Assembly: GCF_000143415.4 (NCBI RefSeq)
Contig: NW_003314261.1
Span: 3,650,880-3,714,879, forward strand
Source of the DNA: Selaginella moellendorffii
Taxonomy: Eukaryota > Plantae > Lycopodiophyta
Reading direction: 5' to 3'
DNA: 64,000 nt
Shown: piece by piece, positions 13,231 to 59,825 of the stretch
Layout: the number at the start of each line of letters is the position of its first letter
Numbering within the stretch: position 1 is the first letter of the stretch
Made by a program: the position numbers and the translations under genes
The notes under the pieces: generated by a model
The model's database searches: none
Seen by the model: the letters and a program-made list of their open reading frames with translations, nothing else
Told to the model about the DNA's origin: nothing

Positions 13231-13394
13231 GTATCACCCAGCTTACAAAAGTGTGATACGCCTCTACTTGCAGGGAATGGAGTAATTCCAAGAACCAAGT
13301 CCATCTTATGTTGAATCCCACATTCCAAAGGCAAACCATTAAATAGCTCATCCAAAAATACATCACTGAATTCCTCTTGAAGTCTCATGCCCAT
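13231..13394 (-). pseudogene. Older Ty3/gypsy pol remnant interrupted by the LTR element
   Basis: LQEEFSDVFLDELFNGLPLECGIQHKMDLVLG resembles the gypsy protease-RT linker. A PSS*ATPVVVK RT-start-like stretch lies on the other side of the insertion (~5520-5560). Confidence 0.65.
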
Positions 13395-19834: not shown

Positions 19835-20638
19835 CTCAATTTTTTTAAGAATTGCATTTACTAATAGTTTGCTTCATTAACTTCATATAATATAAAAAAT
19901 TATGTCTAAATATAAAAATATTATCTAATATATGTATAATACACAATCTACATCAAAAATCATTTAATAAAGAGTATAATCTAAATAAATTGCTGCGTGT
20001 TAGCAATGTTTTCTTTACATAAATATTAGTGCTTATTATTTATTAATTAAATTAATCAATTGAAAGTTTATAATGATATACATGTTAATAATTTATAAAC
20101 ACAAGATTAATCTTATTACATATCAACCATTAGATTTTAGAATAAAATAGAATATACTAGAAAGTGCTTAGAAAAGTTTATAAATTATAAAAACAAGATT
20201 AATTTAAATAAATAGCAACTATTAGATTGTAGAATATTCTAAATATCCAAGTATATTCTATGTATATCTGACATATTATATCAAATTAAAAAACCTATTA
20301 GAGATGTTGAAAAGATAATACTTAAGAAAGATATCTCTTACAACATCTAAAATAATTATATTAGTTACCAGTCTTAAGTAGATTAAACATAGCCAAATTT
20401 CAGTAGACAAGGCTCCCTTAAAAAACTACCATTACTTAAGGAATGAATGTAATCCTTCATTTTCAAAAGATATTATTTTTCAAAATTAAGACAAAATCCT
20501 ACTTTGGGAGGAACATAGATACTCAGGCATGGGAAATATTTCATCATGTTAAGAGGATTCTCTTATAAGTCTCCATCACTTTTGCAAGAAAAAAATAAAA
20601 ATAAAAAAATTCTACTCTATAGTGATTTATCATAGAAT

Positions 20639-23305
20639 GAGCTGATTCGCACAATCCTAAAGTTAAGTATGATTTTTAGGACATTTTTACTTTGTATTTA
20701 GTCCTAAAGTTAGGACAAGTGTCTTAACTTAAGTTTAAGTTATTTTCACTAGAAAAATCCTGATTTGCACTTAATACTTTTTTAAGGTGGTTAACTTAAA
20801 TTTAGGATATCACATTGAAAAGTTAAGGATCCACACCCACCCCAATCTTTAACTTTTGTAGCTAAAATTCAATTGGCATATTCTTTGGGCCAGCATGGTA
20901 GGGAGTGGGTGTGGTGCAAGATCTGGTGGTGCCATAAGATCAACTGGTGGAGCTTGTGGGCGCCGCATGATGCCCCTTCAAGCCAATGCCACAACATCTG
21001 CAGCATTAGTGGCTGTAGTAGTGGAGCCCAAGACCCCAATAAGCTTTCTTTATTCTTTTTCTCTAGATTTGCATTCCAATCAATTTAGGAAACAATCAAG
21101 AAGGATGACCTAATCTAGGTAAACAAGGAGAATGAGCAAGGACAAGTTAAGTGTAGTTGGGGAAAGAATTGGTCACATTAGGAGACTATGTTCTTTATAG
21201 ACCTCAAGAGCCAAAACTTCATAAAGTAGTTAGAGTTGACAAGCTGTGAGAAAAGGGTTACAATTGCAAAGAGGTGGAACATCATTGAGGCCAAGTTGGT
21301 AGACTATGGTTTCAAGGATAGAGATGGAATGGCTTACCAATGGTGTTGGCTAAACATTTCTGATGAATACAAGAATATAAATAATTACCAAAACAAGAGT
21401 GTCAATTTCTTCACCCTTCCAAGGAGTAGATGCAAGATATTTACAAGGCTATGGATAGTTACATGGGAATTTGGGCTGCAACAAACCCTCTATATATTAC
21501 AGATAGCAATGCTGACTTTAAAACTACTGTTGCAGCCATTGTTGTTGAAAGGGCAAAGGAACTTGAAAGTTGGCTTCCTCATCTACATTTTCTTCTTCCA
21601 CTAAGTTGAATCATAATACTACAACATGAACTCATCCCACCAAGTTGAGCACCTAAGCTTCACCCACCAAATGCCTAGTATGCCTAGTCTATAGTTGAAA
21701 GCTACACCTAATTCCACTCAAGACTCATTATCATCTTTCAATTCATGCAAAGTGCAACATCTATCATCTAAAAACCTCTTAATACCTCAATCACTAAAAG
21801 AAGAGCCCAACTTATGATATGCCAAGTTTTATTCTCCACTCCATATGGTTCAATCTCCTCCATGTAGGGCTGGAGGATCTCTATCTCCTAGGTTTGGATC
21901 ATATCCATTTCCTAGGTTCTGCATGTGGGGATTATGAAGAAGAACACATAGTGGAGGAGATATAGATGTTTGGCTAGGGTTAACACTTTGCAAGCTCTTC
22001 AAGAACCTTGACTACAATGGGCTTTTTTCCAAGTTTGCTATTGGGGAATCTATAGCTCATGAGATATAGATACAACTACTGCTATAATTCAGATACTTGG
22101 CTACAAGATCATGTTCCTAGAAAATGCAGTTCAAGTTTAGGAGGTCATTAAACAATTCTAGAGGATTATACACACAAAGCTCCTGAATGTTGTAGGTGAT
22201 ATTGATTGCACATATTTTGAGATTGTGCAACCCTTGACTAGTGATGGTGTGGATTACTTCGATAGGAAGTAGAGGTACAGCATCATAATACAAGCTATTT
22301 ACAATGCAAGGAAGAGGCTTTTTAGCATCTACATTGGTTGGCTAGGTAAGCTTGGCTTCTAGTTTTCATTTTTAATTGCTTTTTTATATAAAAAGTGTTT
22401 ATGACATGTTGGAGGAATTCAAGGTTAAGGGTGAAGATTGCAAACGGGCAACTACTGCAATAGCTAGTTACCCTGGCTTTCAATGAGCGGGTGAGGCTAG
22501 ACCTCATTGGAGATAAAGGATACCAGCTTTAGTCATACTTGATATTCCCCATCTTGGTAAACTTTCAAGTTTTGGTTTAAAGATTTTATGCTTTTGGTTT
22601 TTGCAAGTGTAAACCTTGGGGTGGGTGAGAAAACCTTTAACGATCACTATTACATGGTAAGGATTATGGTTGAGCAAGCTTTCAACTTGCTTAAGTAGAG
22701 ATTTTGATGCCTGGATCAGAAGCAAAAGGTACACCCCAAGTACTTCACCACTTTCATCCAAGCATATTACATTTTACATAATGTTTTCATCAACTTGGGT
22801 GAAGTAAATGTTGAGCGAGAAATAGACGCTTGAATACTAAATGTGAGCAATGGAGACTTCAGTGAGGGGTACTCTTTAATTGCTATTGCCTTTTGGTTGA
22901 GTACCCAAACCCTATTAGCATTTGATAGCTTAGGATGATGTGGCTAAGGTCTACTTTACCTTTGGGCAACATCTTTGTTTCCCTGATCATTGAATTATAA
23001 GTTTTCCAAATTTCAAATTTAAAACTGAAGGGAAGTTCAAATTTGAAATTATTCCACTTTTAAGATAAATACCATGTTTGAATGAAAGAGTTTGTTTTCT
23101 TAAAATTTAAGATAAGATTATATGTGAAGTAGATGTGTTTTTAACATAAATTTGATTTATGAGAAGTTATATATTTGAAGCAAAATTTCCTTAAATTTTA
23201 TCTTAAAATGCTTAAGTAAGGACTAAATGCAAAATAACCATAATAGATAGCTTTAAGGTAGTACATAAGTTTAAGTTAGGATAAAGACTATGTACGAATG
23301 GACTC
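20639..23305 (+). mobile_element. Decayed PIF/Harbinger DNA transposon (Myb/trihelix-like ORF + DDE transposase)
   Basis: Transposase remnants VVGDIDCT..DYFDRK*RYSIIIQAI..IYIGWLG (~22185-22345), LIGDKGY (~22503) and RIMVEQAFNLLK*RF..ILHNVF (~22660-22790). Myb-like remnant at ~21160-21400. Imperfect 15-bp TIRs (11/15) flanked by AAT on both sides. Confidence 0.82.
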
Positions 23306-24622
23306 AATAACCACGGAGTGGAACTTAGACCTTTGGCTATATGTTTAAAGGCAATGGAGTGAAACTTAAGTTTCAAATTCTTGAATTATTGAACAAAGGG
23401 ACAGAGTTGAACTCTAAAATATGCAACTAAAGAGTGAAAGGATTAAAGTATGGAGTGACTCTTAAGCATTCAACCCAAGAAGAAAAGCATGAATGTTAAA
23501 ACATTTAACATCTCAATACCAGAACCAATATGCAAAACAAAGCTAAACAGAATTTGGCACTATTTCAATATAATAGTGGCATAACGTAATGATATAGATA
23601 CTTTACTAGCTAGTATAGTATCTATATCAGTGTGGAGTTTGAGCTTAGATGCAAGATGAATATAGAATAAGGACAACACAAGTAAAAATTAGACTACTCA
23701 ACCTACCCATTATCTCTATTATATATTTAGAACCTCAACAACATCACCCGCACTTTGTTCATCATAATTGCACACATTTTCTACAATTTGATGATGAACA
23801 TTGAATTTTAATCTAGCCATAGCCACAAATGCTACAAAACATTAATGGTTTTTTTCTTTCATAGTTTATTTATTTTCTAGGCTTATCTTTTTTGTTGGTT
23901 AACATCTCCTCAGAACTCACTTCAAGGATAAAAGTTCTTTCTCATTGCCTTGATACACTGTCAAATATCACTAATAGAGTTCTTAGTATCCTCATCTTAT
24001 ACTAGATGAAATGATTCTAGACATTGTTTAGACCGATTTTACTCTTCAATTTTGGTAAATTTAATTTCTAGCTTCCCAAAGATTGCTAAAGTTTTCTATT
24101 GTTTGGTTGTAAATCTTTAGTTATAAGTGAATTCCAGCTTATAGTCTCCACTAGCATGATCAACAACATGCAATGGCTCCATGTGTTGATGCACATGAGC
24201 TGGATTTAACACTCTTAACAATTTATTCTATCCCATGTTATTGAATTTGGTGGATACAATCATAGTGTTGACCAAGAGCAAAATTCACATGTTAATGTTA
24301 ATTCTCACAAGAGGCAATTAAGTCTACAACAACAAACCTCTGACAATGTTTTGTGCATAAAGATTTTAATTAGATGTAACCATTACAATATTTGAATAAT
24401 AATAAAATGCTTTTGGGTTTTCTAGCACTAAGTTGGAGCATAAGGCCCACTTTTGAATCTCCTTGTAAATATTCTGTTTTTTAATTTTTTGATTAATCAA
24501 AGTCTCTTGAAATTCTATATGTTGCATTTAGAGGGAGGATCCCACCTCAATTACTAATATCACTTTGGATTAATATATAACCCAACAAAAAAGGGATGTG
24601 ATGCAAATTTATTTCCAACTCC

Positions 24623-24627
<5 letters not shown>

Positions 24628-24682
<55 letters not shown>
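24628..24682. repeat. (TA)n microsatellite
   Basis: About 27 uninterrupted TA units. Confidence 0.97.
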
Positions 24683-24686
<4 letters not shown>

Positions 24687-27600
24687 TTCTAGAGTACTTA
24701 GAGGTGCTAAACAAAGGAAATATTTATTGGAGTCCTAAAAAGGACTTTATACTTAAGCCTAATTTTTGGCTGGATGCTTTTCAGAAAAGGATTGTGAGAA
24801 CCTCTAAATATGTTTCTGCTTTCTTACTTTTAAAAAAATTATAATTAAGAAAACAGCCAAAAAAAAACTTTTATAACTGCAAATAAAAATAACTGTATTA
24901 ATTTTATAGTACATATTTTTTAATAAAATGTACAAGAAATAATCTTTTTTGTTGGCCAAAAAAAAATAATACTGAATAAATATATGTTGATAAAGATGTT
25001 TAACTTTATTAGGGTATAGAATAATGAAATTAATTTTATTTATAGTTTTTATTGTTTTAACTACTGTTGCTGAAAATTTTGTTTGTCTATTAGATGCATT
25101 TACATTAGAAATTATAAAATATAATACTGAATATGCATTTTGAAATAGTAATTTAATGAAATATCTTGCTATAAGCTTTGGAAAGTAAAAATTATAAAAA
25201 TAAAATATTATACTTAGGAATTAAAGGTGCTTAGATCTCATTTAGTATAAAGCTTGTTGAGAGAGTATCCAAGAGCATAATTATGTATTTTATGTTATCT
25301 TCAGTATAAAAAATATTTTTTGAAAGTCACATAATATTGGTTAATACATTTAAATAGTCATCTAAAAGGTCTAATTCTTAATGTAAGTAAGTTTTCTTAA
25401 TGCTTAAGCTAGCTAGATTCATGGGATTTGTTAGAATAGGCAGAGAATATTGGCCATTAAATGGTTTGCTAAAAGTGTTTGTAGCAAAGTTGAGCTAATT
25501 GGAACAATTTAAACTTATAATTAAGATGATTATTTGGAATGAAATTTCTTACAATTAATAAAGTAATACAGCTTTTGAAGCAAGGAGTTTTGCACCAAAT
25601 TTATTTTCCTTTTTATTATTAATATAATTTAAAGTGTATAATTCTGGACCAAAAAGGGTGAAAAGAAAAAGGAGACACAAGCCCGCCAAAAGCTAACAGC
25701 AAAGCAGCAGGGTCCCTGAGCGAGCAATCAATGTCACATTTCCCGCTCCTGTGAGGTACAAAACCATTAAGAATGATCATTCTTATTTACGTGTCTTTGT
25801 GATACAATCACCAAGCCAAGCTTCAAGCGATTAAAAACCATAACCATCACCGGCGCGCAGTGTGACCCAGTAATAGTGACTTGGATGGGGATGGATGGGA
25901 TGTTGGAGATGGTGGATGGATGGGTGGATGGATGCGGTGGGAGGGTGACGATGAATGTTATGTGTGAGTGAGTGTGTGTCAGAGGGAAAGGTGCGTGAGT
26001 GAAACTAGTAGCAGTCGCAGTCGGGCTTTGACTGACACAGCACTACGGTAAATACGAGCGTAGCTGTACAAGGGCAAAACCCAGGGAGGTCGGGTTTGAT
26101 TCCAGCAGAGGGGATCTTCTCCAGGGCGAGGTGAAAAAAGAAGAAGCACAAAAGAGAGGAGAAATAAAAGAAGTGGAAGATTCGCCCAGAGCTCCATTCA
26201 TTCCTTCCGCCTTTGAAGCCCAGCCCAGCCCTAAGTAGCTCTACAAGAAGCTACATTCATATCAAAACGACACCACCAATTTGTTAGAGGGCGCCCACGC
26301 AATCGGAGCAGTGGCGCGGTACTTGCCCGGGAGCCTTGATTGCGAGCTTCTAGTACCGAGTTTGAATGACTCCATGACACCCATGCATGCGTGGCATGAT
26401 ATGCATGGACCATGGCATGCGGAGAATATTCGTGCCTGAGGCTAGCTTTTCTTTGGATTAACGTTGCTAATGTATGCAAACCCAGTACGGCTACCTAACA
26501 CCTTCCCGGGGCCAATCGCCATCGCACAAAAGCGTTGACCAAAGTGCTATGTCATGTGTCTGTTACCAATTCGGGATGCGGCCATGTATGTATCCCTGCA
26601 CCTCAAGCTATGGGGTCATGTCATGCAAATGGCCATGGCATGGTGATATAATGGCGCGTATGCGTATGCCTAGTGTATTGGAACTCGAGAGGGCGTCTCG
26701 AGACGAGCGTAGGGGATGGAAAAGAGGAGGTATCTTCGTAATCTGTTAGGTGGTTATGATGCCACCCATGTGATATCCTCATATTCCATGCATAGTAAGA
26801 TTCGCTTCCCATATCGAGACTCCATACGATATAGGACATACTTAATTAGATACATTTCTTCTATATCGATACACATACGTACCCCCCGGGCGTAAATGCC
26901 CTGTACAGTAGAAACACTAGGCGTCTAGGCTGCCCCCCCTGGCCGCCCGTCCCGTATGTATAGCGCATACATACGTACAAACACTGAGAGGGGGGCGTTC
27001 ACTGGTAGAGAATACGCCATACATCCTGCCACCGCTTTTATACACTGAGTAACTGAACAAGCTGTTGCTGTCGCTGGGCTTGCCTACAGTAGAGAGATAC
27101 GATTTGGCTACGATGCCTCCATACCTTCTACGTGTAGCGGGCCCCGTATATACATATATATAGTATTGGTTTTGAATGGACGAAAGGAAGTGTGAAGCTC
27201 GCATTCCACACGAGCGGCTGGCTGTGATACCACTGGCGGGACTCTTCTTTTGCGCTCTGTTTTCTTCTTCTTTCTTCTTCTTCTTCGTCTTCGTCTTCGC
27301 GTCTTCTTCTTCTTCCTCCTGGCATGACAACACACACTTGAGCTCGATCTTTCAGAACGTAAGATAGGAGGAAATCGAGAGCTTGCCTGGGTTATGAGAG
27401 GCTTCCTTTTGTCTCTTCTTCTCCAAACCACGCAGCGAAGAGCAACGATCGACGGCCACGGAACAGGGAAGCTCTCCTTTCTTTCTATCTCCCTCCCTCT
27501 CTCTCTCTCTTTCTCTCACTCTCTCTCTCAGTAGAGAACTTATAATCGAGTGTGTGAGGAGTGAGTGAGAGAGAGAGAGAGACTGATATCTTCCTGTGCT

Positions 27601-32342: not shown

Positions 32343-34238
32343 ATGCCGGCGCTTCTCAAGTACTCGGCGGAGCTCCGCGATGGAATCCCGGTGCTCTACG
32401 GCTCCAATGGATTCCCGTTGAAGTGTTCCAGGTTTGAGCCGGCAGGGCATTCCTTCCATGCCGCGGCGCTCAAGCTGCTAGGGCTTGGGGCCGCCATCGC
32501 GGAGGACGACGACGACGACGATGAAATATTGGGCTCCAAGAACGAGTTTGGGGATTCGTACTATGCCAAGGGGAAGAAGAAGGTCGGCGGATCGGAGCAG
32601 CAGGATCACTACGCGCTGCTGGGGCTGAGCCATCTCCGGTTTCTAGCCAGCGAGGAGCAAATTCGTAAGGCGTACAGGGAGGTCGCGCTCAAGCACCACC
32701 CGGACAAGCAGGCTGCGCTTATTCTCCTGGAAGATGGCGAGGACGCTAGAGAGGCCAAGAAGCAGGAGATTGATGCCCACTTCAAGGCGATCCAGGAGGC
32801 TTACGAGGTGCTCGTCGATCCTGTCAAGAGGAGGGCCTACGATTCCGTGGACGAGTTTGACGACGAGGTTCCATCGGATTGCGCGGTCGAGAGTTTCTTC
32901 CAGGTTTATGGGCCGGTGTTCTTGAGGAATGGACGGTGGTCGGTGATCCAACCGGTGCCAGAGCTCGGGCAGATGACCAGCTCGATGGCGGAGGTGGACA
33001 AGTTCTACGATTTCTGGTTTTCGTTTAAGAGCTGGAGGGAGTTCCCACACGCGGACGAGTTTGAGGTGGAGCAAGCCGAGGGGCGGGAGCACAGGAGGTG
33101 GATGGAGAGGCAGAACCTCAAGCTTCGCGAGAAGGCAAAGAAGGAGGAGTCCGCGAGAGTGAGGACCTTGGTGGAGAATGCGTACAAACGGGACCCCAGG
33201 ATCATACGTAGACGGGAGGACGAGAAGGCCGCGAAGTTGATGAAGAAGCAAGCAAAGCTTCTGGCCAAGAAGGAGAAGGAGGACCAGGCGGCCAAGGCTC
33301 TGGAGGAGGAGAGGTTGCGGAAGGAGGAGGAGGAGAAGCGTCTAGCGGAGGAAGCGGCGGCGCAGAAAAAGCTCAAGGAGAAGGAGAAGAAGCTGGTCCG
33401 AAAGGAGAGGTCGAGGCTGCGGAGTCTTGCGGCCGGGGTGGTGTCCAGCAAGGCGTTTGCAACGAAGGAGGAGGACGTCGAGGCGTTGTGCTCGAAGCTC
33501 GACTTGGCGCAGCTGAAAGCTTTGTGCGAGAAGCTGGAAGGCTGCGGTGGATCCATGACCGACGTTGGCTCGGCTCTCTCGGCGGCACTGGACGGGGCCG
33601 AGGGCGAGAGTAATGATCCCGCGGACGAAGATAAAAATGCGCAAGCTCCCGTGTTGATGGAAGAGAAGAAGGAGAAGGAGCGGCCGTGGACGAGGGAAGA
33701 AGTCGATTTGCTCCGCAAGGCGATGGCCAAGTATCCGAAAGGAACGTCACAGCGCTGGGAAGTCGTCAGTAACTACATCGGCACCGGCAGATCGGTGGAG
33801 GAGATACTCAAGGCGATCAAGACGGTGCTCCTGCAAAAGCCCGACTCCTCCAAGGCGTTTGATACGTTCTTGCAAAAGAGGAAGGCGCCGAGCTCCATAG
33901 CTTCGCCGCTGTCCACCAGGGCGGAGGAGGGGACAGAGCTGCCGGGCCAGGAGAATGGAGCAAGCGCCGCCCGCGTCCCTGAAAGTGGCGAGAAGGAGAA
34001 GGATAAAGAGCCGAGCTTGGCGAACGGGAAGACGAGCGTAGCAGAGGATGGTGGTGGTGGCGAGCAGGACGCCTGGAGTGAGACGCAAGAGCTAGCGCTC
34101 GTCAAGGCTCTCAAGACGTTCCCAAAGGAGACTGCGCAGAGGTGGGAGAGGATCGCCGCGGCTGTCCCTGGGAAGAGCAAAGCGCAGTGCTTCAAGAAGT
34201 TTGCTGCGCTACGCGAGAACTTCCGGTCCAAGAAGTAA
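32343..34238 (+). CDS. ZRF1: Zuotin-related factor / DNAJC2 (J domain, zuotin domain, two SANT domains)
   Basis: FEPAGHSF, J domain with HHPDKQ, FYDFWFSFKSWREF, and two SANT repeats (WTREEVDLL..RWE; WSETQELAL..RWE). Intronless CDS. Confidence 0.95.
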   Translation: MPALLKYSAELRDGIPVLYGSNGFPLKCSRFEPAGHSFHAAALKLLGLGAAIAEDDDDDDEILGSKNEFGDSYYAKGKKKVGGSEQQDHYALLGLSHLRFLASEEQIRKAYREVALKHHPDKQAALILLEDGEDAREAKKQEIDAHFKAIQEAYEVLVDPVKRRAYDSVDEFDDEVPSDCAVESFFQVYGPVFLRNGRWSVIQPVPELGQMTSSMAEVDKFYDFWFSFKSWREFPHADEFEVEQAEGREHRRWMERQNLKLREKAKKEESARVRTLVENAYKRDPRIIRRREDEKAAKLMKKQAKLLAKKEKEDQAAKALEEERLRKEEEEKRLAEEAAAQKKLKEKEKKLVRKERSRLRSLAAGVVSSKAFATKEEDVEALCSKLDLAQLKALCEKLEGCGGSMTDVGSALSAALDGAEGESNDPADEDKNAQAPVLMEEKKEKERPWTREEVDLLRKAMAKYPKGTSQRWEVVSNYIGTGRSVEEILKAIKTVLLQKPDSSKAFDTFLQKRKAPSSIASPLSTRAEEGTELPGQENGASAARVPESGEKEKDKEPSLANGKTSVAEDGGGGEQDAWSETQELALVKALKTFPKETAQRWERIAAAVPGKSKAQCFKKFAALRENFRSKK

Positions 34239-36179: not shown

Positions 36180-39100
36180 ATGATATTCGGATCGAGCAGC
36201 CGTAAGTTTCTACATTCCAGTCGCTAGTGTCTCTGGAAATTCGCTCACTCTCTCCATTTCTCAGCCTTTGGGGCTTCTAGTCCCAGCCTCTTTGGCGGAG
36301 CGTCGGCTTCGTCCAGTCCGTTTGGCTCCACAACATCCACATCTCCGTTTGGGATGAACTCCGCGGCGACGAATCCATTTGCTGCCAAGCCATTTGGGAG
36401 TCCTACCTTTGGGCAGCAGACTGGCGGACTGTTTGGAAGTGGGACTGCTACCGGTGTGTTTGGTGCTTCCCAGGCAGCGCCATTTGGCTCGAGCTCCCCT
36501 GCATTTGGCTCGGCTACTGCGTCTCCCTTTGGCAACACACAATCAGCGTTTGGAGCCAGTGGTATGTGATCGGTCTATGTTTTCTCGTGCTTTGCTAACA
36601 TCTCTACTTTGGTTTTCACTGTGTTTTAGGAAGCCCTGTGTTCGGACAAATTGGACAGAAGCCAGCTTCGCCTTTTGGATCGTTTGGGAATACCTCGTCT
36701 CCCTCGAATCCATTTGCAGCTCCCGCGTTTGGGCAAACACAAGCATCTTTTGGGACACAACAGCTGCCTACTTTTGGTGCTAGTCAACCAGCTTTCGGAG
36801 CGAGCTCGACACCGGCCTTTGGATCGACGTCTGCGTTCAGTAGCCAGCCGGCTGCAAGCTTTGGAAATCCATTTGGAGCCACGAGCTCGGCCTTTGGAAG
36901 CAGCACTCCAGTGTTTGGCCAGTCGGCTCCTGCCTTTGGGACAGCTTCGTCTCCCGCTTTTGGCTCGACTCCTGCAGGTTTTGGCACCGGTGGTTTCAAT
37001 TCTCAGCCTACTTCTGCTTTTGGTAAGTTTTCCAGAGTGTTTTTGGTTGCTCTAACATGAGGTCCTCGCAGGGTCCACAATTTCATTTGGTGCTCGGCCT
37101 GGAAGCCGGGCAATCCCCTACGTTCCAAAGACCGAAATTGATGGATCCGCGACTTTGAAACTGTATTCGATCTCTGCTATAGAGGGATACCACAACAAAA
37201 GTCACGAGGAACTGCGATGGGAGGATTATCAGGCTGGAGACAAGGGTGGGTTTCTGGTTTTCATTCTTGATTGCTCACTAATTCTTTTGCGGTTTAGGTG
37301 GCCCGGCACCGAATAATACTGGGGTTTTTGGTCAGCCTTCAAGCAGCAGCCCATTCGGGTCATCATCTCTTACTCCAAGCGTAAATCCATTTGGTGCTTC
37401 AAGCTCTTTTTCCCAGCAACAAAAGCCTCAAACTAGTTTTCCGTCTTTTTCGACTACTTCCACTCCTACATTCGGTTCGTCACCTTCTATTTTCAATTCT
37501 GTGAGCGCTCCGGCCATTAGCAGCGCTCCCAGTTTTGGAACTTTCAACAGCTCCCCCTCCTTGTTTAATACCCAGTCGGCGTTCAGTACTCCCTCGAGTA
37601 CACCAGCATTTGGAAATAGTTCGTTTGGTGTCCAACAAGCTCCTATATTTCCATCGCCACAAACAACGCAACCAGTTTTCGGGCAGTCTTCTGCCCCCAT
37701 CTTTGGAAGTTCAAACTCTAGTAGCCTTTTCAACAACATGAGCCAACCCAAACCTGCTGGCGCCCCAAGTGTAAGTCTAATATCTTTGTGTGCTTTGTTT
37801 TCCTTATTGATGATAGATTTGTCTTCAGTTCTTTCCTTCATCTCAACCCAACACGACGTCATTCTCTTTTCCATCCCAGACCCAACCGCAAGGTATGATT
37901 CTTGATATTTACTGTTACAAACAACTGACACTTTTATTTTCAGGATTATTCCAAAGCACGCCCAGTTTGACACCCTTTGCACCTCCGTAAGTAGCTTTGA
38001 AAGAAATAAAATTTTCTTCTCTTTCTTCTCTTACATGTTTAATTTCAGGACCATTTCAACTACAATGGCTCCCATGCCTGCTCCTGTAAGTGCGCCATTT
38101 GGAACATTGCCGGCTATGCCGCAGATGTCTATCGGGCGAGCGGCAGGATCAAATCCAACTGTTCAATATGGAATATCGAGTATACCTGTAAGTTTCTTGA
38201 ACTTCTCTTGGAAGAACGCTGACGAAGATGAACTATGATTTGCAGGTGTCAGACAGGCCGGCGCAAATACATTCTAATTCCCTACTCATCCCAAGACACA
38301 TCACGCCCAGATCAAAAATCAGGATGCATGCGAGAAAATCCAATGCAAAGAAGGACTCTCCGAAGGTATCCTTTTTCAGTGAAGGTGAAGAAGCACCAGT
38401 GACTCCGAAGGCAGATGTATCTATTATTCCACGAGAGAATCCACGTGCGTTGTTTATACATCAAGTGAACCAGGCCCCTGTGACTGCAGTGGCTGCTAAG
38501 CGAGCACCTGATATCGTGAATTTGGAGCACAGTGAAGGTAGCTTTTACTCGTCAGTATCTTTTTCCTAACATGTTTGCTTGATTGACAGATTTATATAAC
38601 GAACCGAAATCTTTTCCTGTTGTTGGCGACGATTCATTGCCACCGGATATGTCAGGTTCGAAGCTTTCTTCCGTCGTATGTAACATGGAGCTGATTGTTT
38701 TTCTCTACAGGACTTGATTGGTCTATTCCAAGTACTACAGATGGTCTGCAAGCCGCCCCTCCTAAAAAGGTTTCGTCTAAGTCTCCATCAAAGCAGAATG
38801 GTGTTCGAGAAGAACTCAACCACAGGGGTAATGGATACATATCCCTGACGGGTCACAGGGCTGGAGAAGCAGCTATAGCTTATGAACATGGGGCTGATAT
38901 CGAAGCTTTGATGCCGAAACTCAAACACTCTGATTATTATACGGAACCGAGGGTGCAAGAGCTGGCAGCTAAAGAGCGTGCAGAACCAGGATACTGCCGG
39001 CGAGTGTCTGATTTTATAGTTGGCCGAAAAGGATATGGTCACATCAAATTTCTTGGAGAGACAGATGTCAGACGTCTTGATATCGAAGGGATCATCCAGT

Positions 39101-42100
39101 TCAACAAGTGTGAAGTGCTGGTCTATATGGATGAGAGTAAGAAGCCTCCTCTCGGACAGGGATTGAACAAGCCTGCGGAGGTCACTCTTTTAAATGTCAT
39201 GTGCATTGACAAATCTACTGGACGCAGCGTCACAGATGGGGCACAAGCGGAACGGTTTGAAAAGAAGTTGAAGAAGAAAACTCAAGCGCAGGGTGCAGAG
39301 TTCGTTTCTTTTGATGTCTTGAAAGGTGAATGGACATTTCGAGTGAAGCACTTCAGCCGTTATGCTTTTGATGAGTCGGAGGACTCGGAGGACGATGCTT
39401 TGGAATCTGGAAAACTGGTTCCCGCTGTTATGGATATGATGGAAGGGGTCGAGGATGAGGCTGCTTACAGGGAAAATGGCGCAGAGGTATTTCTGGAATC
39501 GCGAGGTCCGTCTTCTGTGGACGAAGGAGAAGAAGAGCTCATGGAGGATGTGAGATCAAGGAACCATAGGACAGCTCTGCCTCATTCATTGCCCGCGCAG
39601 CTTAAACTGGATCCATTGAAGTTGCACCAGCTCAAAGCATCGTTCTTTCCTCTGGATGAAAACGAGTCGGCAGAAATGACTGACGTTGGTACCTACAAGA
39701 AATCAACTCCGCCGTCGGTTATCAAGCAGTACAAGTCCAGTTTGGAAGAAGGCGAGTTAAAACGTCCATCGAAGCAGATAAAGCTGAGTCCTCATTCACT
39801 ATGGCAACGGTCACCAATGCTTCTGCCGCAGCAATCGTCCTTCCAGGCTCTTACTGCTCCAACGCCATCACTGGTGAAGACTTCGAGAAAGCTAACGTCT
39901 GGTTTCCGGCTTCAGGAATCTGACAGCGAAAAACTTTTGTCCACGAGCAATTCGGGTGGTGGTGTTGTCGATGCTGCACTTTTCATGGGGACCTCTTTCC
40001 GTGCCGGTTGGGGTCCAAACGGAGTGTTGGTACATTCTGGTTCCTCTGTGGGCCAGTCCAAAGCGACTACGGTGGTTTCGTCCTCCATAAAACTTGAGAC
40101 GGTTTCTCTCGACAGAACTGCAAGAGACGATCGAGGTAAAGTCAAGGATATCCTTCTTGATTTTCAGTTTAATGCTCCTCTCGCGCTGCACATGTCCCTG
40201 AGCAAGGTTGTGAGCGAAAGTAACGGCTTGAAGATGCGGAGCTTGGTTTGTAGCAAGGATCAGCTGGAAAGGCTCACCAACGACTACGAGGACCTGATCG
40301 AAAAGCAGCATGGTACTCCAGGTGTATCCGCAGCTGATCAGCTGGTTTTAAAGCATCAGGTGCTGGCATGGCAGCTCATCTGTGTTCTCTTCTCGGAGAA
40401 GGATGCTCTGGTCACCGAAACGGAAGAGGCTTCAGAAAGCATGGCTGAGATGAAAGCCCGTATAGCGAACATCGATCCGGGAACTGAAACTCTAGTGCGC
40501 AAGGCTGCATTTAGTGGCTGGCTACAGGACAGCGTCTTTCATCTGGTCCAGGCCGACTTAGACTCAACCGGGAAGGACGCGAGCCATATCAGGGATATAA
40601 TGGTCTTATTAACTGGCAAACAGGTGGAGCTGGGTGTGAGAAAGGCCATCCTTGCAGGGGACGTTCGTTTGGCGTGCCTGCTGAGCCAGGGCGGTGGACT
40701 GGTGGCAAACAGGGAGGACATCTTGTCGCAGTTGGAGGTCTGGGAGTCGGAGGGACTTTGCGACGGTCTCATCGAAAATGACAGGATATCGCTGTTCAGG
40801 CTGCTTGGAGGAGATATCCACGGTTCTCTCGGCGATCAAGAGATTGACTGGAAGCGCTTCATGGGGATGTTGATGTGGTACACGCTGCCTCCTGAGGCTG
40901 GGCTTCCGGACATCATCCTCGAGTTTCAACGTCTTGTTGAGGAGGGAGACGCGTTTAAGCCGGTTCCCATGTACATTGAAGAAGCACCAGTGGAGGTCAA
41001 GGAAGCTCCAGCACCACCGCCGGCCTATGACAGCGCTTACTATCTCATGCTTTTGCATGCGAGAGGGAGCCTTGACGAATCAGATGTGAACAAGATGTTT
41101 TCCTCCTCGGCATCTACATTTGATCGTCTGGATCACCGGGCCGCTTGGCATCAGAAGGAAGTTCTCCAGGCAATCGGCGTTTTGAATCAGTCGGATTCCT
41201 ACGCGCTGGACATGAGTTTTGTCTCACAGCTTCTTGCCGCCAACTTGATACATTGGGCAATTTACGTGGTACTCCATATGCCAGTGTGCCCGGAAACTAC
41301 AGGTTTGCACGAGAAGGTGGTCAAGGATATACTGAGCCAGTACTCTGAAGTTTGGAGCAACTCGGAGGTTCAGCAGAAGTTTATAGAGGACGAACTCGGT
41401 ATTCCACCGGAGTGGCTGCACGAGACTTTGGTAAGCTATGTGGGCTCAGTGCGTGTTCTTCTGACTCTTAGGATGTTTTTTCAGGCTATCTACTGGCTGT
41501 ACCGGGGAGACTTTGAGAAGAGCCTTGTGCATTACCTCAAAAGCTTTATGTGGCAAGAGGCTCACGTCGTGTTTATGACCAAGGTGTCCGCATCTTTGCT
41601 GCTAAATGGTAAGCAATTGGTTTTTGGTAGGCTATGGTCATCACCACTTGAACGCAGGGAAAAAGGAAGAGATTTGGAGCTACGCGAGCCAGATGGATGC
41701 GCATAAAATGGAGATCGAGAACTGGGACATTGGCTCCGGCTTGTACATAGACTTCTTTACTCTCCTGGGGTCCTTCGAGAACAGCGAGGCTTATGATACA
41801 GAGCTGGTACGTTCTTTCTAAAACCAATCTCGGTTCCACATTCTAAAGGCTGGTATTTCCTTCGTTTTGTAGGAATCTCCTGTGGAAGCCAAGATGTGTG
41901 CGTGCAAGGACTTCTTCGAGAGGCTCAAGGAGTCGCAACGATTGTGGGAAGCTAAAGCTTCGAAGCTACTGAGGTATAGTTCGTGTAGATTTTGTTTTTC
42001 TTCTCTTCGAGTGAGACTAATCGATCTTGTTAGCAGGCTTGCGTTGACGAGGATGGCCGATGAAGTGGCGGCGCTCCTGGTGAGCGAGAGCAAAGTTAAG

Positions 42101-42235: not shown

Positions 42236-42388
42236 AAGTTTGCCTGTGTGTTACAAATAAATGTGTGTGAAAGAAAAGAAAGATTCTTCCCGTGTGTAAT
42301 GGTATATTCTCTAGGGTTCTTGGGTCGATAATAAAAGGGTCCCATTTTCTTGCGTGGAATATTTCTAGGGTTCTTGGGCAAGGACAGG

Positions 42389-44645
42389 ATGTTGGAACAG
42401 CTCTTGATCTTCACGCGCGGCGGCCTCATCCTGTGGAGCTGCAAGGAGATCGGCAACGCGCTCAAGGGATCGCCGATCGACACGCTGATCCGGTCGTGCC
42501 TGCTCGAGGAGCGCAGCGGCGATCGATCCTTCCGCTACGATGCCCCAGGTGCGTCCTACACGCTCAAGTGGACGTTCCAGAACGAGCTGGGGCTCGTGTT
42601 CGTGGCCGTCTACCAGCAATTCTTGCAGCTCCTCTATGTTGACGAGCTGCTGGCCATGGTGAAGCGCGAATTCTCGGCGGTGTATTCTCCCCGGAAGGCC
42701 TCGTATCGGGACTTCGATGAGGTGTATCGGCAGCTCGAGAAGGAGGCGCTGGCTCGCGGCGAGGCCAACAAGGGACTTAACAAGGCAAACAGGAAGATCG
42801 AGGATGGAAGCAGCAAGAACACCGATCTGCGAGGGGGAACTGTGCTTCGCGGGTCGGTCAAGGGATCGGCAGGGACAAAGGGGCAAAAGGATGGGAAAGA
42901 GGATGACAGTGCTGCTGATCACAAGCCTGCCGCTGTTGTGGAGAAGGCTGGCCACGAGAATGGAGTGACAAATGGGAAATTGAGCAGCAGCGATGAGGAG
43001 TCCAAGCCGGTGGAGGTGGCCTTCGATCGGAGCAAGCTCCAGAAGCTGAAAGCGAAGGGGGGAAAGAAGACCAACGCTGCGAAGAAGGAGAAGGAGGATC
43101 CCAAGAAGAAAGTGAAGCAGGATAGAAAGCCGTGGGACGCTCCAGCGACTGGGAAGCTGGACTACTCCGAGCCTGTTCGTGACACCAACGACGAGGAGGT
43201 TGTGGAGGTTCACGGGAAAAGTTTGGTGGACTACGAGGAGGACGAGGAGTCCGATGACGAGGAGGCGAAGGACGAGAAGGCTCCTGCCAAGAAAGGATGG
43301 TTTTCGAGCGTTTTCCAGAGGTACTTTTCTTTAGTTTGCCGACACTGCTAGAGACTTTATGTTTCTCGATTTTTGTTTTTCTTGCGCAGCGTCACTGGGA
43401 AGGCGGCTCTTGAGAAGGCGGATTTGGTGCCCGCGATGAAGGCGCTGAAAGATCGTCTAATGACCAAGAATGTGGTACGTATGTTTTACGTTCTTGGGTT
43501 GTATACTCGGCAACTTTGCTTTGGCAGGCTGAAGAGATTGCTGAAAAGATATGCGAGTCTGTTGCTGCAAGTCTTCTCGGCAAGAAGCTTGGAACGTTTA
43601 CTCGAGTATCATCCGCTGTAAAGGTGCGTTTGCGTTGAAAGTCTTGGCTCCATCGAGCGCTTTAACTTTGTTTGTTTACTCAGGAGGCGATGGGAGACGC
43701 TTTACTGCGAATACTAACTCCAAAGCGTTCCATTGACATCCTGAGAGATGTAAAGTCGGCAAAGGACGAAGGTCGCCCCTATGTGATCGTATTTGTGGGA
43801 GTTAATGGAGTGGGGAAATCTACAAGTCTTGCCAAGGTTCTGCCATTGTTGTATTTGCTACTTGACTAATGCTTGCTCGTTACCAGGTGGCTTATTGGCT
43901 TAAAAGCCACGAACTGAGTGTCTTGATAGCCGCATGCGACACATTTCGTTCGGGAGCTGTGGAGCAGCTCCGTACTCACGCCAAAAGGCTCCAAACTACG
44001 CTGTACGAGAAAGGATACGAAAAAGATCCAGCAAATGTGGCCCGGGAGGCAATCGCCACAGCTGCTAAAACTAAGCACGACGTTGTGCTGGTTGATACTG
44101 CAGGTCGAATGCAGGCAAGTTTTTCAAAGCTTTGCTTCTCGTTGTTTTCTTTGCGTTCTTACAATACATATGTTTTTTTCTTCCAGGATAACGAGCCTCT
44201 TATGAGGGCCCTTGCGAATCTGATCAACGTAAACAAGCCAGATCTGGTGCTCTTTGTCGGAGAAGCGCTTGTGGGCAACGAGGCTGTGGACCAGCTCTCC
44301 AAATTCAATCAAGTCGGTGGCTTTTTCTTTTTTCTGGTTTCTTCCTCTGATGAGAGTTTCCCCTTGCAGACTTTGGCTGATCTCTCGGCAACGGCGAAGC
44401 GAAAGCCGATTGACGGGATACTTCTCACCAAGTTCGATACCATCGATGACAAGGTCTCAGTTCTATCTTTCATGCTTGCTTGCGAGCTTCTCTTATCAAC
44501 GTGTGTTTGTGTGTCGCAGGTGGGAGCAGCGTTGTCCATGGTCTATGTTTCTGGCGCACCGATCATGTTTCTTGGATGCGGTCAGAGTTACCATGACTTG
44601 AGGAGGCTCAATGTCAAGTCGATTATCAAGACTTTGTTGCAGTAG
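42389..44645 (+). CDS. SRPRA: Signal recognition particle receptor alpha subunit (multi-exon)
   Basis: N-terminal [16 protein letters not shown] longin-type domain. GTPase motifs [16 protein letters not shown] and TKFDT. GC-AG intron at 44115-44186. Confidence 0.96.
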
Positions 44646-44710
44646 TGATACTACCCGCAGTGTGCTGGTTGTGGAGGTGTGTTCTTGGTAATAAAAGACG
44701 AGCTTGCTGG

Positions 44711-47102
44711 TTACTTATCATCCGCGTATGCAAACTCCGACGAGTATATATCCTCTACAAAGTCGTCGCAGAAGAGCAAGAGCTCGGCAGAGATTTCTTC
44801 CACTTGTTCGTCCATGATCATGGCAAGTAGTTTTTCGTGCTTTTCATTCCTTGGCTTCTCCCTTGTTTGCCTGCGATATTTTCTATGAGTGTCAAATAGG
44901 AAAACTCAAAACTTACAAGTCGTTCCCCACTGTGCTGCCAGTGCTTCGATGCCTTGTCGGTTCCTCTCTGCGAGATTTCTGTGAGCTGAGATCGCGAATA
45001 GTGAAAAACTCAAACTTACATCTCGGTCATTATACTGTCAATCTTTGTTGGTTCCTCCTTTGTTTGCCTGCGAGATTTATGTGAGCTGAGATCGCGAATG
45101 GTGAAAAATTCAAACTTACAACTCGGTCACCACTAAATGATCAATGCCTCGGTGCATTGTTAGATCCTCTTTTGTTTGCCTACGAGTTTTTCTGTGAGCA
45201 GAGATCGTGAAAACTCAAAACTTACGCCGGTGTACTGTGATGCCTTGCTGGAAACTCTTTCGTTTGACTGCAGCCAATTTCACTTTGAGCGGGAACTGTG
45301 CAAGGGATGGTTAAAAACTTACGAGATGGTTTCCATGGTCTTCTCAGGATTTCTGTATATAAAGTCTTAGAACCTTTTAAAGAAAGAGTAAAAGCTCGTC
45401 CAACCTTGGAGCCATTTCATTCATCAATTCATCGAGTATAAATTTTCCAATGTCCTTCCCTTCGTCTTGGTCGGATACAAGCCACCGTTGCTTCAACTCG
45501 TCTTCCTGGGAGAGGAAGAAAGGAAAACTGAGTTTAAAACTCGGCAAACTTCACTTACATGTTTTAGCACTGCTAGCATCGAGTCTAAAATTTTATCCTC
45601 AAGCTGCTTCGCGTTGTCATTTCTAAGATCCAGTACTTCATGCCTCTCTTCGATTATCGGTCTAAGAAAGGCGTTAGAACGAAAATGTCTGAAAGACTCT
45701 GAAAGAGATTACTTACCGATGATGCTCGGTGCGGCTGCGATGACGATGACACTTAGCATTGTTATGTTTCGGCTGAGTTGCGGCTGAAGATGTGGTTGCA
45801 GCTGCGAAGAAAGTAAAAAAAAAAAATTAACGAAGATAGAAAACCAAAGAAAACAGACCTTGACGAGCAGTCTTCTCCCGTTTTCGTGCGGATTGCTTTT
45901 GCGACCTTCGCTTACATTTTGCATAGAGGAGCGCAACGAGAGGCACCTTCTTGGTCTTTTTGGGAGAAGGTTTTCTTGCTTTCTCTACACTTCTAGCAGA
46001 CTCTGGGGCAGGCTCGGTTGGAACGGACACTGGCGGACTTCTTCTGTGGCCACGCCTACGCGTTCCTCCAAAAGTTGTCCTGGTCCTGTCACTTCCCGAG
46101 TCATACTTGTGCAGGTCACTGTGGATAGATGATCTCCTTAACGGACGAAAACCGTGAGCCGGATGCCTATAATGCTTACCAGCTTGTCTGTGATTGTTGT
46201 GAAGCCATGTAAGCGTGTGATACTCTTGCGGTGTTTGCCCGTGTGTTGTGTGAATATAAGCAGGCCTGCGGGGAGACTTGGAACGCTGCTGTTTTGCTTG
46301 CACCGTGGCGAGCATGTCTAGTAGCTGCTGCTGGATGCTTGTCTGGAAGATCAAAAAAAGAGAAGAAACACCACAATCAGCTCCAAAGGTTTTAATGAAT
46401 CGAAGCAAAAATGTTGTAAGTATTGAGATACCTGATGATCATCAAGAAAAAGAGCAACATAGTACAGCATTTCACGCGTAAGCTTTCACGAACAACACAG
46501 ACTAGTACTCCCAGACAAGGTAGAAGAAGAAACCATACGCTCAAGAAAAAATCGAAAGCATTGGATACTGCATACGTGATGATCATCAAGAAAAAGAGCG
46601 ACAAATCGCCAAGCACAGCATTTTCACGCGTAAAAAGAAAACTTCCAAGACAAGGTAGAAGAAGAAAACCATTCAATCAAGCAAGAAAAAAAATCGACTG
46701 CTTTGCTATCGGGAAGAAACGAAGATTTACCTGAGCACAGTGACCCACTGTGAGCGCCTTGAGCTGCCGATTTTGCTCCTCCAATTGCCTCCTCATGGCA
46801 TCAACCTGTTCTCCCATCCCCACCGCCATTTCCACCACTTGCCTCACGCTCGCCTGATGCTCGCTCTCCCTCCTCTCCTGATCCAGAGCCGCCATCTCCC
46901 TCCGCCGCCGCCGCGCGATCCATGGCGGCTCCAGCGCCTGGAGGGAGGAAGACGAAGAAGCACAAGTACCTCCCCTCACCACCAGCGCCGATAATCCATC
47001 AGCCTCAGCGTAGCAGTCCAAATTCCTCCTTACAACCTCGGCAATCCGGCTGAATCGATCTGCGCGACTCGCCACAGCCGCGACGGTGGTGTCGTCCGCC
47101 AT
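44711..47102 (-). CDS. Coiled-coil protein with a Moonraker/KIAA0753-like C-terminus (multi-exon, micro-exon array)
   Basis: ATG at 47102 and a chain of GT-AG-bounded exons. The terminal exon 44870-44711 reads ...LLAMIMDEQVEEISAELLLFCDDFVEDIYSSEFAYADDK*. The family call is from recalled similarity only. Confidence 0.6.
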
Positions 47103-47370
47103 AGCCTTAGTTCAAATCTTTCCTTGCGCTCAAACAAAATAGGGCAATCCGGACCGCTCGCTTGTATGGGGCCAATCCTAGCCATTGGTTCTGGGAGAGT
47201 ACGATCACTAGAAGAGTAGTGTTTGATGATCGCTGGAAAGATGGAAGAGAGCACCTTGATCATGTCCTTCTCCTCGATAGCTCGCTTTCCTCCATCTCCA
47301 TATGTGCTCGCGATGCCATGGAATTAGGGTTTATATTATGGAGCATGGCTGAGGCGCTGCGACGGTGGCA

Positions 47371-57501: not shown

Positions 57502-59825
57502 ATGGCGGCATCGGCGTCGTGTGCCTTGGCGTTCCATCCGCTTCTACAAGGTACTAGCGCTACTCGCTTGAGACGATCGGCATTCACACCGCACAAATCT
57601 CCTCCCCAGCAATGCATCGTCATCGCTCGCGCTTCGCAGTCGAAATTCCCGGCGGCGACGCTGGCATCGGTTGTTCTAGCAATCTCTGGCGCCACTCCCG
57701 CCATGGCCGTGGACGTCCAGCCTCCTCCAGCCCCCCAGGCACAACAAATCGAGCAGACTCCAGCGGCGGGGTCGCCATTCTCGCTCATGGAAGCTCCGCC
57801 GGTGGAGGCCCGGAAGAAACTCGATCTTCCAGAGGGGAACCAGTGGCGATACAGCGAGTTTTTGAACGCGGTGAAGGGAGGGAAGGTGGAGAGAGTGAGG
57901 TTTAGCAGGGATGGCAGCGTTCTCCAGCTCACCGCCGTGGACGGGCGACGAGCAGCAGTGATCGTTCCAAACGATCCCGACCTGGTCGATATCCTTGCCA
58001 TGAATGGAGTGGATATCTCGGTCTCGGAGGGAGAGTCCGGCAACAATCTCTTCAACATCCTCGGCAATCTCCTCTTTCCACTGCTCGCTTTCGGAGGCTT
58101 GTTCTTGCTCTTCCGGAGAGCTCAGGGAGGCCCTGGCGGTCCCGGAGGCCTTGGAGGTCCCATGGACTTTGGACGATCGAAATCCAAGTTCCAAGAGGTT
58201 CCAGAGACGGGGGTTACATTCGCGGACGTTGCTGGAGCCGACCAGGCAAAGCTGGAGCTCCAGGAGGTGGTCGACTTCTTGAAGAACCCGGAGAAGTACA
58301 CGGCCTTGGGTGCTAAAATTCCAAAAGGCTGCCTGCTCGTCGGCCCTCCAGGGACTGGGAAAACTTTGCTAGCGAGGGCTGTTGCTGGTGAAGCCGGTGT
58401 GCCGTTCTTCTCGTGCGCCGCCTCTGAATTCGTGGAGCTCTTTGTCGGTGTTGGAGCCTCCCGTGTAAGGGACTTGTTCGAGAAGGCCAAGGGGAAGGCT
58501 CCATGCATTGTGTTCATCGACGAGATTGATGCCGTCGGCAGGCAGAGAGGTGCTGGCCTGGGTGGTGGAAATGACGAGCGCGAGCAAACTATCAACCAGC
58601 TGCTCACTGAGATGGATGGTTTTTCTGGGAACAGTGGAGTCATAGTTTTGGCCGCCACGAACAGGCCCGACGTGCTCGACTCTGCTCTCTTGAGACCTGG
58701 CCGATTTGATCGGCAAGTCACGGTTGACAGACCTGATGTGGCTGGACGAGTGAGGATTTTGGAGGTAAAGCTGCAGTTTTGATAACGTTCTTACTTACGT
58801 TTTCCTTTTCTTTTCTTTTCAGGTCCATTCTAAAGGAAAATCCCTGGGCAAGGATGTCGACTTTGAGAAGATCGCAAGAAGAACTCCGGGCTTTACCGGC
58901 GCGGACTTGCAAAACCTCATGAACGAAGCGGCCATCCTGGCGGCCAGGAGAGATCTCAAAGAGATTAGCAAAGATGAGATCTCTGATGCTCTGGAACGAA
59001 TCATCGCTGGACCTGAGAAGAAGAATGCTGTGGTTTCGGAGGAGAGGAAGAAGCTGGTTGCTTACCACGGTAAGCAAACTCTCACTTTTAGTTTCGTCGG
59101 GGACTTACTCGAGTTTTTGTTGGAGTAGAGGCTGGCCACGCACTCGTTGGAGCACTGATGCCCGAGTATGATCCAGTCGCGAAAATTTCCATCATCCCCC
59201 GGGGTGGAGCCGGAGGTTTGACATTTTTCGCACCCAGCGAGGAGAGACTTGAGTCAGGTTTATACAGCCGAAGCTACTTGGAGAACCAGATGGCGGTGGC
59301 TCTTGGGGGAAGGTACGTGATCTAATCTTCCCATTTTCTTTGCTTTAAGCGTGCGATTCCAGAATCGCGGAGGAGGTGATCTTCGGCCCCGAGAACGTCA
59401 CCACCGGAGCTTCAAACGATTTCCAGCAAGTGTCGCGGGTTGCACGCCAGATGGTGGAGCGATTTGGATTCAGCAACAAGATTGGCCAGGTCGCTCTCGG
59501 TGGCTCTGGCGGAAATCCTTTCCTCGGCCAACAGGTTCTTGCGCAAAATCAGAAACAAAGTAGAAACTGAAACTTACTCTCTTTCTTTCTTTGTTCTTCG
59601 CAGCTTTCTCAGCAATCCGATTACTCCATGGCCACCGCTGACGTTGTCGACGCCGAGGTTCGCGAGCTCGTCGAGTCGGCCTACGCTCGAGCCAAGCATC
59701 TCATCACGACTCACGTTGAGATCTTGCACAAGCTCGCCAATCTCTTGATCGAGAAAGAGACTGTGGATGGCGAGGAGTTTTTGAGCCTCTTTGTGGATGG
59801 AAACGCGGAGCTTTACTTGGGATAG
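57502..59825 (+). CDS. FTSH1: Chloroplast ATP-dependent zinc metalloprotease FtsH, type A (FtsH1/FtsH5-like)
   Basis: Transit peptide, [17 protein letters not shown], Walker A GPPGTGKT, Walker B FIDEID, and HEAGH split by an intron at ~59070-59128. Confidence 0.96.

Follow-up and report, generated by a model that had tools for sequence, protein, structure and literature searches.

A spikemoss gene encodes a candidate microtubule-associated scaffold with a short Moonraker-like C-terminal tail

In this work, we asked whether a gene of the spikemoss Selaginella moellendorffii could be a land-plant counterpart of the animal centriolar protein Moonraker (MNR/KIAA0753/OFIP). The gene lies in a 64,000-nt stretch of genomic DNA (contig NW_003314261.1, positions 3,650,880 to 3,714,879 of the forward strand), here called the window, to which all coordinates refer. 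Human MNR is a microtubule-binding scaffold that brings in OFD1, FOPNL, and CEP90 (PMC9484695); its binding to FOPNL/OFD1 and to microtubules and its distal-centriole location have been described (PMC13507227, PMC9484695). A passage of PMC13507227, citing Chevrier 2016, gives the C-terminus of KIAA0753 as both necessary and sufficient for FOPNL binding. The Pfam family of MNR, PF15718, is regarded as metazoan (PMC13358043). In Paramecium, OFIP has been called conserved (PMC5374602), and a later paper described MNR there as "not functionally conserved" (PMC9484695). We found no paper naming a plant homologue of MNR, and a text search found none giving the vertebrate tail sequence. A preliminary description of the locus had proposed that the spikemoss gene is a candidate Moonraker homologue, on the strength of a short peptide encoded by its last exon.

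The gene occupies 44711-47102 on the minus strand. It consists of 11 exons with 1536 nt of coding sequence, i.e., 511 codons and a stop, and none of the 11 exons contains an in-frame stop. Its features are as follows.

46731-47102, minus strand: exon 1, 124 codons with the start codon; open reading frame followed by a GT donor at 46730
45859-46342, minus strand: exon 2, 161 codons; splice joints 46342/46731 and 45801/45859
45717-45801, minus strand: exon 3, a His/Arg-rich basic linker
45559-45661, minus strand: exon 4, a helical acidic segment
45405-45505, minus strand: exon 5, acidic; contains a sequence that weakly resembles the tail motif (ILDEL.NEMA)
45323-45352, minus strand: exon 6, mini-exon of 30 nt, phase 2
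45226-45267, minus strand: exon 7, mini-exon of 42 nt, phase 2
45120-45179, minus strand: exon 8, mini-exon of 60 nt, phase 2
45020-45067, minus strand: exon 9, mini-exon of 48 nt, phase 2
44917-44967, minus strand: exon 10, mini-exon of 51 nt, phase 2
44711-44870, minus strand: exon 11, 52 codons and the stop; a single long amphipathic acidic helix
44732-44818, minus strand: Moonraker-like tail motif (I..SEF) of 29 residues, corresponding to positions 936-964 of the PF15718 profile and aligned without gaps to the last exon of a true MNR gene

All ten introns are of the GT..AG type, and their plus-strand joints show the matching CT..AC ends in RNA contigs. The introns are short, in keeping with Selaginella moellendorffii. 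The RNA support came from four public runs belonging to four studies, whose contigs were mapped over 44650-47200. Since each of the ten introns was recovered as a splice joint, in contigs from up to four of these runs, the gene is transcribed and spliced precisely as modelled. The transcript was assembled in all four runs examined, each from a different study, and the contigs extend to 47158, which gives a 5′ UTR of at least 56 nt. In addition, 12 RNA-like runs contain 28-59% of the words sampled.

The contigs also carried some variation. An alternative, frameshifting GT..AG intron of 61 nt within exon 2 (46119-46179) was present at low depth in two runs. Variants (alleles or strains) occurred in minor contigs over 46202-46327 and 46986-47117 and at position 45441; four were located in exon 1 (two synonymous, E>K, and N>D), four in exon 2 (two synonymous, R>P, and A>T), and one in exon 5 (F>S). 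Exon 11 showed no variant across the four RNA runs. One low-depth contig of run X1 fell entirely within intron 1 (46417-46707), with a 7-nt insertion and a 1-nt deletion, and could represent unspliced RNA, DNA carry-over, or another allele.

Another feature of the gene is a repeat array that precedes the tail. Five tandem copies of a unit of ~100 nt lie on the minus strand (44820-45322); they are formed by exons 7-10 and the first part of exon 11, every one with the intron before it. Aligned, the five intron-plus-exon units have a mean column identity of 67%. QT(K/R)E-like residues recur at each exon start, and all of the mini-exons share phase 2. The array consists of tandemly duplicated mini-exons that are spliced as such.

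The convergent neighbour (42350-44645, plus strand) encodes SRP receptor alpha, with SRP-alpha_N and SRP54 GTPase domains. Its stop codon is 65 nt from that of the spikemoss gene studied here, and RNA contigs cross both 3′ ends, indicating that the 3′ UTRs of the two genes overlap. Elsewhere in the window, long single-ORF genes at 1244-2998, 32343-34238, 38695-41706, and 57502-58782 encode a PPR protein, a zuotin-like DnaJ/Myb protein, Nup98-96, and an FtsH-type AAA protease; these are ordinary housekeeping neighbours, none of them cilium-related. An AT-rich region (20000-26000; GC 0.30-0.34) is situated between genes of ~0.5 GC. Two direct segment copies ~5.8 kb apart (6000-7400 and 11800-13300) hold minisatellite arrays of CTCGGACTCCAT with periods of 12, 23, 35, and 70. 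The surrounding DNA has a strongly negative GC skew, and the two copies have the appearance of long terminal repeats from a non-autonomous retroelement.

Consistent with the preliminary description, which had characterized the upstream exons as coiled-coil and low-complexity, AlphaFold2 modelled exon 1 as a short N-terminal helix followed by a long helix of 64 residues (residues 60-123; pLDDT >90), and exons 2 and 3 are very basic and low-complexity. Exon 2 is S/P/R/K/H-rich, with K/R/H at 48 of its 161 residues and a pI of 11.6, and had no Pfam match; the pI of exon 3 is 10.9. Exons 4-5 are acidic. When exon 11 was modelled alone, AlphaFold2 predicted a single helix spanning residues 4-43, with pLDDT values of 92-96 over residues 11-40. 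The peptide quoted earlier is indeed encoded by this exon, at 44732-44818 on the minus strand. It had been placed at the extreme C-terminus, and it does lie near the end of the protein, but six residues (AYADDK) separate SEF from the stop at 44713-44711. A second, weaker resemblance to the motif was also considered. Retention of intron 5 would carry the frame of exon 5 on to a stop after eight further codons (45377-45505, minus strand), and the resulting end, ILDEL.NEMA..LDELLLFL, weakly resembles the first half of the tail motif. As a second motif copy, this read-through of exon 5 into intron 5 was not significant by BLASTP or Pfam, and no contig retaining intron 5 was seen among the RNA contigs.

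The preliminary description had quoted an animal tail, and it is this quoted sequence that stands for the human tail in the comparison here. A true MNR tail was obtained from metagenome contigs, which were scanned with a degenerate DNA pattern made from the last 13 residues of the motif and unique in the window. Because the quoted animal sequence guided the design of this pattern, its retrieval of MNR is not independent evidence. It matched seven metagenome loci (L001-L007). Two of these, L003 and L004 (contigs Ga0065711_1005330 and Ga0181612_163171), are vertebrate host DNA containing the 3′ half of a Moonraker gene, and represent two species whose sequences are ~4% apart. Neither was taken for human: Alu signatures were absent from the 5 kb and 14.5 kb of sequence, the two differ from one another, and their tail departs at several positions from the quoted human one. 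The analysis drew on nothing but the MNR exons of these contigs. The ORFs of L004 match PF15718 at profile positions 303-372, 369-441, 518-573, 744-789, and 870-934, and the last exon of L003/L004 scores 51.7-55 bits over positions 932/936-964. That exon reads DE-like, AEL, C.D..E....SEF, with five residues between SEF and the stop. Hence, a true MNR gene confirms the animal pattern given in the preliminary description, and the spikemoss and MNR motifs each end 5-6 residues from the stop. The other loci (L001, L002, and L005-L007) are unrelated and were kept as controls.

How strong, then, is the resemblance of the two tails? By BLASTP, exon 11 and the last exon of L004 align ungapped over 29 residues, with 10/29 identical and 22/29 similar. 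The score is 25.8 bits, and the corresponding E-value of 9e-7 applies to one single comparison and overstates the significance, as the hypothesis arose post hoc from the match itself. Thirteen hydrophobic positions of exon 11 are in register with those of the MNR tail, and the Smith-Waterman local score of the pair has a z of 8.5 relative to composition-preserving shuffles. Using phmmer, the pair scored 19.0 and 19.7 bits in the two directions (E 0.012 and 0.008 at Z = 177,635). The same program run with either peptide against the whole PDB (177,635 distinct sequences) returned chance matches only and no MNR structure, with a top chance score of 14.2-14.3 bits; the exon 11/MNR pair is thus ~5 bits over that score in both directions. 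Among the controls, four unrelated metagenome peptide types that satisfy the 13-residue pattern gave zero MNR matches in Pfam, and the Pfam match of exon 11 must therefore also depend on the upstream half of the tail, outside the pattern. Taken as a helix of the FOPNL-binding, C-terminal type, the spikemoss tail shows the resemblance, at a statistical weight that is only moderate.

The profile search was less favourable. Exon 11 matched PF15718 at 11.2-11.6 bits (E 0.07-0.09), relative to a gathering score of 27 bits. The match spans positions 934/936-964 of the 964 in the profile, and its end coincides with SEF. Exons 1-5, scanned one by one, gave no match to PF15718 at E-values up to 10. The same residues of exon 11 also match unrelated families at equal or better E-values, including TFIID_20kDa (14-15 bits) and Mre11_C_bact, which suggests that Pfam E-values overrate the matches of this acidic helix. 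The preliminary description had named the lack of a significant MNR profile match as counting against its own proposal, and at 11 bits versus a cut-off of 27 such a match is, formally, lacking. The search with DUF4378 (PF14309), which we take to be the C-terminal region of the TRM and CAP350 proteins including the M2 motif, gave no match to exon 11 at E-values up to 10. Among the Pfam families that make biological sense, the MNR end is the one that the spikemoss tail resembles most by profile comparison.

Beyond the tail, the two proteins have little in common that can be aligned. In an exon-by-exon comparison with the MNR exons of L004, only the exon 11/tail pair stood out, and the conserved internal blocks of MNR (~303-441, 518-573, 744-789, and 870-934), among them the strongly conserved ones at 303-372 and 870-934, had no counterpart among the spikemoss exons. 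A score between exon 3 and MNR 870-934 (z = 4.4) was set aside, as the segment is His-rich and the match likely due to chance. The middle MNR exons of L004 and exon 2 of the spikemoss gene are alike in composition alone (basic, S/P/K-rich). Regarding the proposal of a Moonraker homologue, then, what stands is a tail resemblance in register at the profile positions of true MNR; the profile score remains below threshold, and the remainder of the protein has no MNR match.

Searches for other relatives of the gene were blank. An exhaustive phmmer search with exon 11 of 1.84 billion representatives, a collection that does not hold this gene itself, returned no matches, and neither the ESM Atlas (exons 11 and 1) nor a metagenome protein scan with exon 11 contained relatives. 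Word searches with exons 1 and 2, which see only proteins of 0.55-1.75 times the exon length, were likewise blank. Exact look-ups of the exon 1 ORF and the last-exon ORF found nothing, the gene itself being absent from these collections. Because the collections lack even the gene, these blank searches say little about its relatives. In the collections searched, no orthologue in another plant showing conservation of the tail was found.

By analogy with the animal protein, we propose that the spikemoss protein may be a scaffold associated with microtubules, whose tail, like that of MNR, docks a FOP-family protein (TON1 or FOPNL); we put this forward as quite possible, if somewhat short of probable. 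From N- to C-terminus, the 511-residue scaffold would comprise a long helix, a basic disordered middle, an acidic helical part, the mini-exon repeat array, and an acidic amphipathic helix. The strongly basic, disordered middle is of the kind that binds microtubules, and it could do so in this protein. The docking site of the last helix would be the TOF-LisH dimer of its FOP-family partner, presumably TONNEAU1 or a FOPNL/OFD1-type protein in spikemoss. Such docking would resemble the way in which the C-terminus of animal Moonraker holds FOPNL, and would bring the FOP-family partner to microtubules.

Whether this likeness reflects descent is a separate question. The spikemoss helix, like the end of MNR, is amphipathic and C-terminal, in a register equal to profile positions 936-964, and the two tails share 13 hydrophobic positions along with those of AEL, C.D..E, and SEF. 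Their overall make-up is also similar, since both proteins combine helices with a basic, S/P/K-rich disordered middle. In contrast, the spikemoss protein is half as long (511 residues vs. ~960 profile positions), lacks the conserved blocks at 303-372, 744-789, and 870-934, and has a tail scoring 11 bits on Pfam, whereas the true MNR tail scores ~52. The tandem mini-exon repeat before the tail is a spikemoss feature and sets the two apart, as does the seemingly broad expression of the spikemoss gene. Given these differences, we regard it as less likely than not that the gene is a genuine, though highly diverged, orthologue of Moonraker in a land plant. If it is, the association of an MNR tail with a partner from the FOP family would be older than the split of plants and animals. 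Plants would have kept it as a component of the TON1-based machinery that organises microtubules, and it would serve sperm basal bodies as well as acentrosomal cells; this scenario is as doubtful as the orthology on which it depends.

The preliminary description had tied the gene to plants with motile sperm, and its expression bears on this point. The authors who rebuilt spikemoss BLD10 described Selaginella sperm-tissue RNA as insufficient (bioRxiv 10.1101/2021.07.25.453666). The transcript of our gene was nonetheless present in each of the four RNA runs, which suggests, from runs whose tissues are given as codes, that expression extends beyond sperm. Expression in all four runs speaks against, and weakens, a basal-body role restricted to sperm, while a TON1-type role fits.

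The most serious alternative is that the gene encodes a coiled-coil and disordered protein that evolves fast and is restricted to its lineage, and whose C-terminal acidic amphipathic helix merely looks like the MNR tail, its function having nothing to do with the FOP family. We regard this as less likely than the docking scaffold, although a good part of the evidence is compatible with it. The Pfam score is below threshold and stands beside clearly spurious matches to the same residues, the likeness covers ~30 residues and no other exon, and relatives were absent from the 1.84 billion representatives searched with exon 11, the word searches with exons 1 and 2, and the atlas. In exons 1 and 2, half of the allelic variants change an amino acid, the mini-exons are recent tandem duplicates, and very many peptides had been surveyed, so that some coincidences are to be expected. 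However, a chance likeness would have to account for a z of 8.5 relative to shuffles and for a pair score 5 bits over every chance score in the PDB in both directions. Register, near-C-terminal position, and helix are all concordant, the control peptides matching the same pattern had no MNR match, and the part of MNR that is matched is exactly its functional, partner-binding end.

A further alternative, which we consider rather improbable, is that the protein is a TRM-type scaffold, non-orthologous to MNR and with relatives in flowering plants, whose divergent C-terminal M2 motif brings TON1 to the cortical arrays of ordinary cells. Land plants retain TON1, a member of the FOP family, and a variety of TRM scaffolds recruit it by means of a short motif (M2) at their C-terminal end (PMC6300067, PMC4357431, PMC11014585). 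The sole element common to all 34 Arabidopsis TRMs, which are diverse, often basic, and microtubule-associated, is the C-terminal TON1-binding M2 (PMC6300067), and CAP350 binds FOP via a motif of the same kind (PMC4357431). The presence of the transcript in every run of four studies, given the scarcity of sperm-tissue RNA (bioRxiv 10.1101/2021.07.25.453666), fits a vegetative role. In fact, the logic that we propose for the spikemoss protein, a basic microtubule-associated scaffold with a C-terminal TOF-LisH-binding motif, would be that of the TRM superfamily and CAP350/CEP350 (PMC6300067, PMC4357431, PMC11014585). On the other hand, exon 11 matches MNR and yet has no match to PF14309, a comparison made by profile rather than with TRM M2 sequences, and neither an ARLMGL-type M3 nor any other TRM motif was visible by eye in the exon translations. 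The presence of a match to MNR but not to DUF4378 leans toward descent from MNR over a TRM-like analogue.

We therefore return to the proposed FOP-family-docking scaffold as a testable candidate, and not as a proven plant Moonraker; the tail match is real, though it is short and stays under the family thresholds. If the tail binds neither TON1 nor FOPNL, the gene would be a cautionary example of how a short acidic helix can mimic a family signature. Mammalian MNR tethers OFD1, FOPNL, and CEP90 to the centriole wall, which raises the question of how this module is tethered outside of animals. A plant protein with an MNR-like partner-binding tail turns this into a concrete question that is cheap to test, namely whether the tail binds TON1 or FOPNL, and the gene may thereby provide a possible link between the TON1-TRM-PP2A system of plants and the distal-centriole complex of animals.
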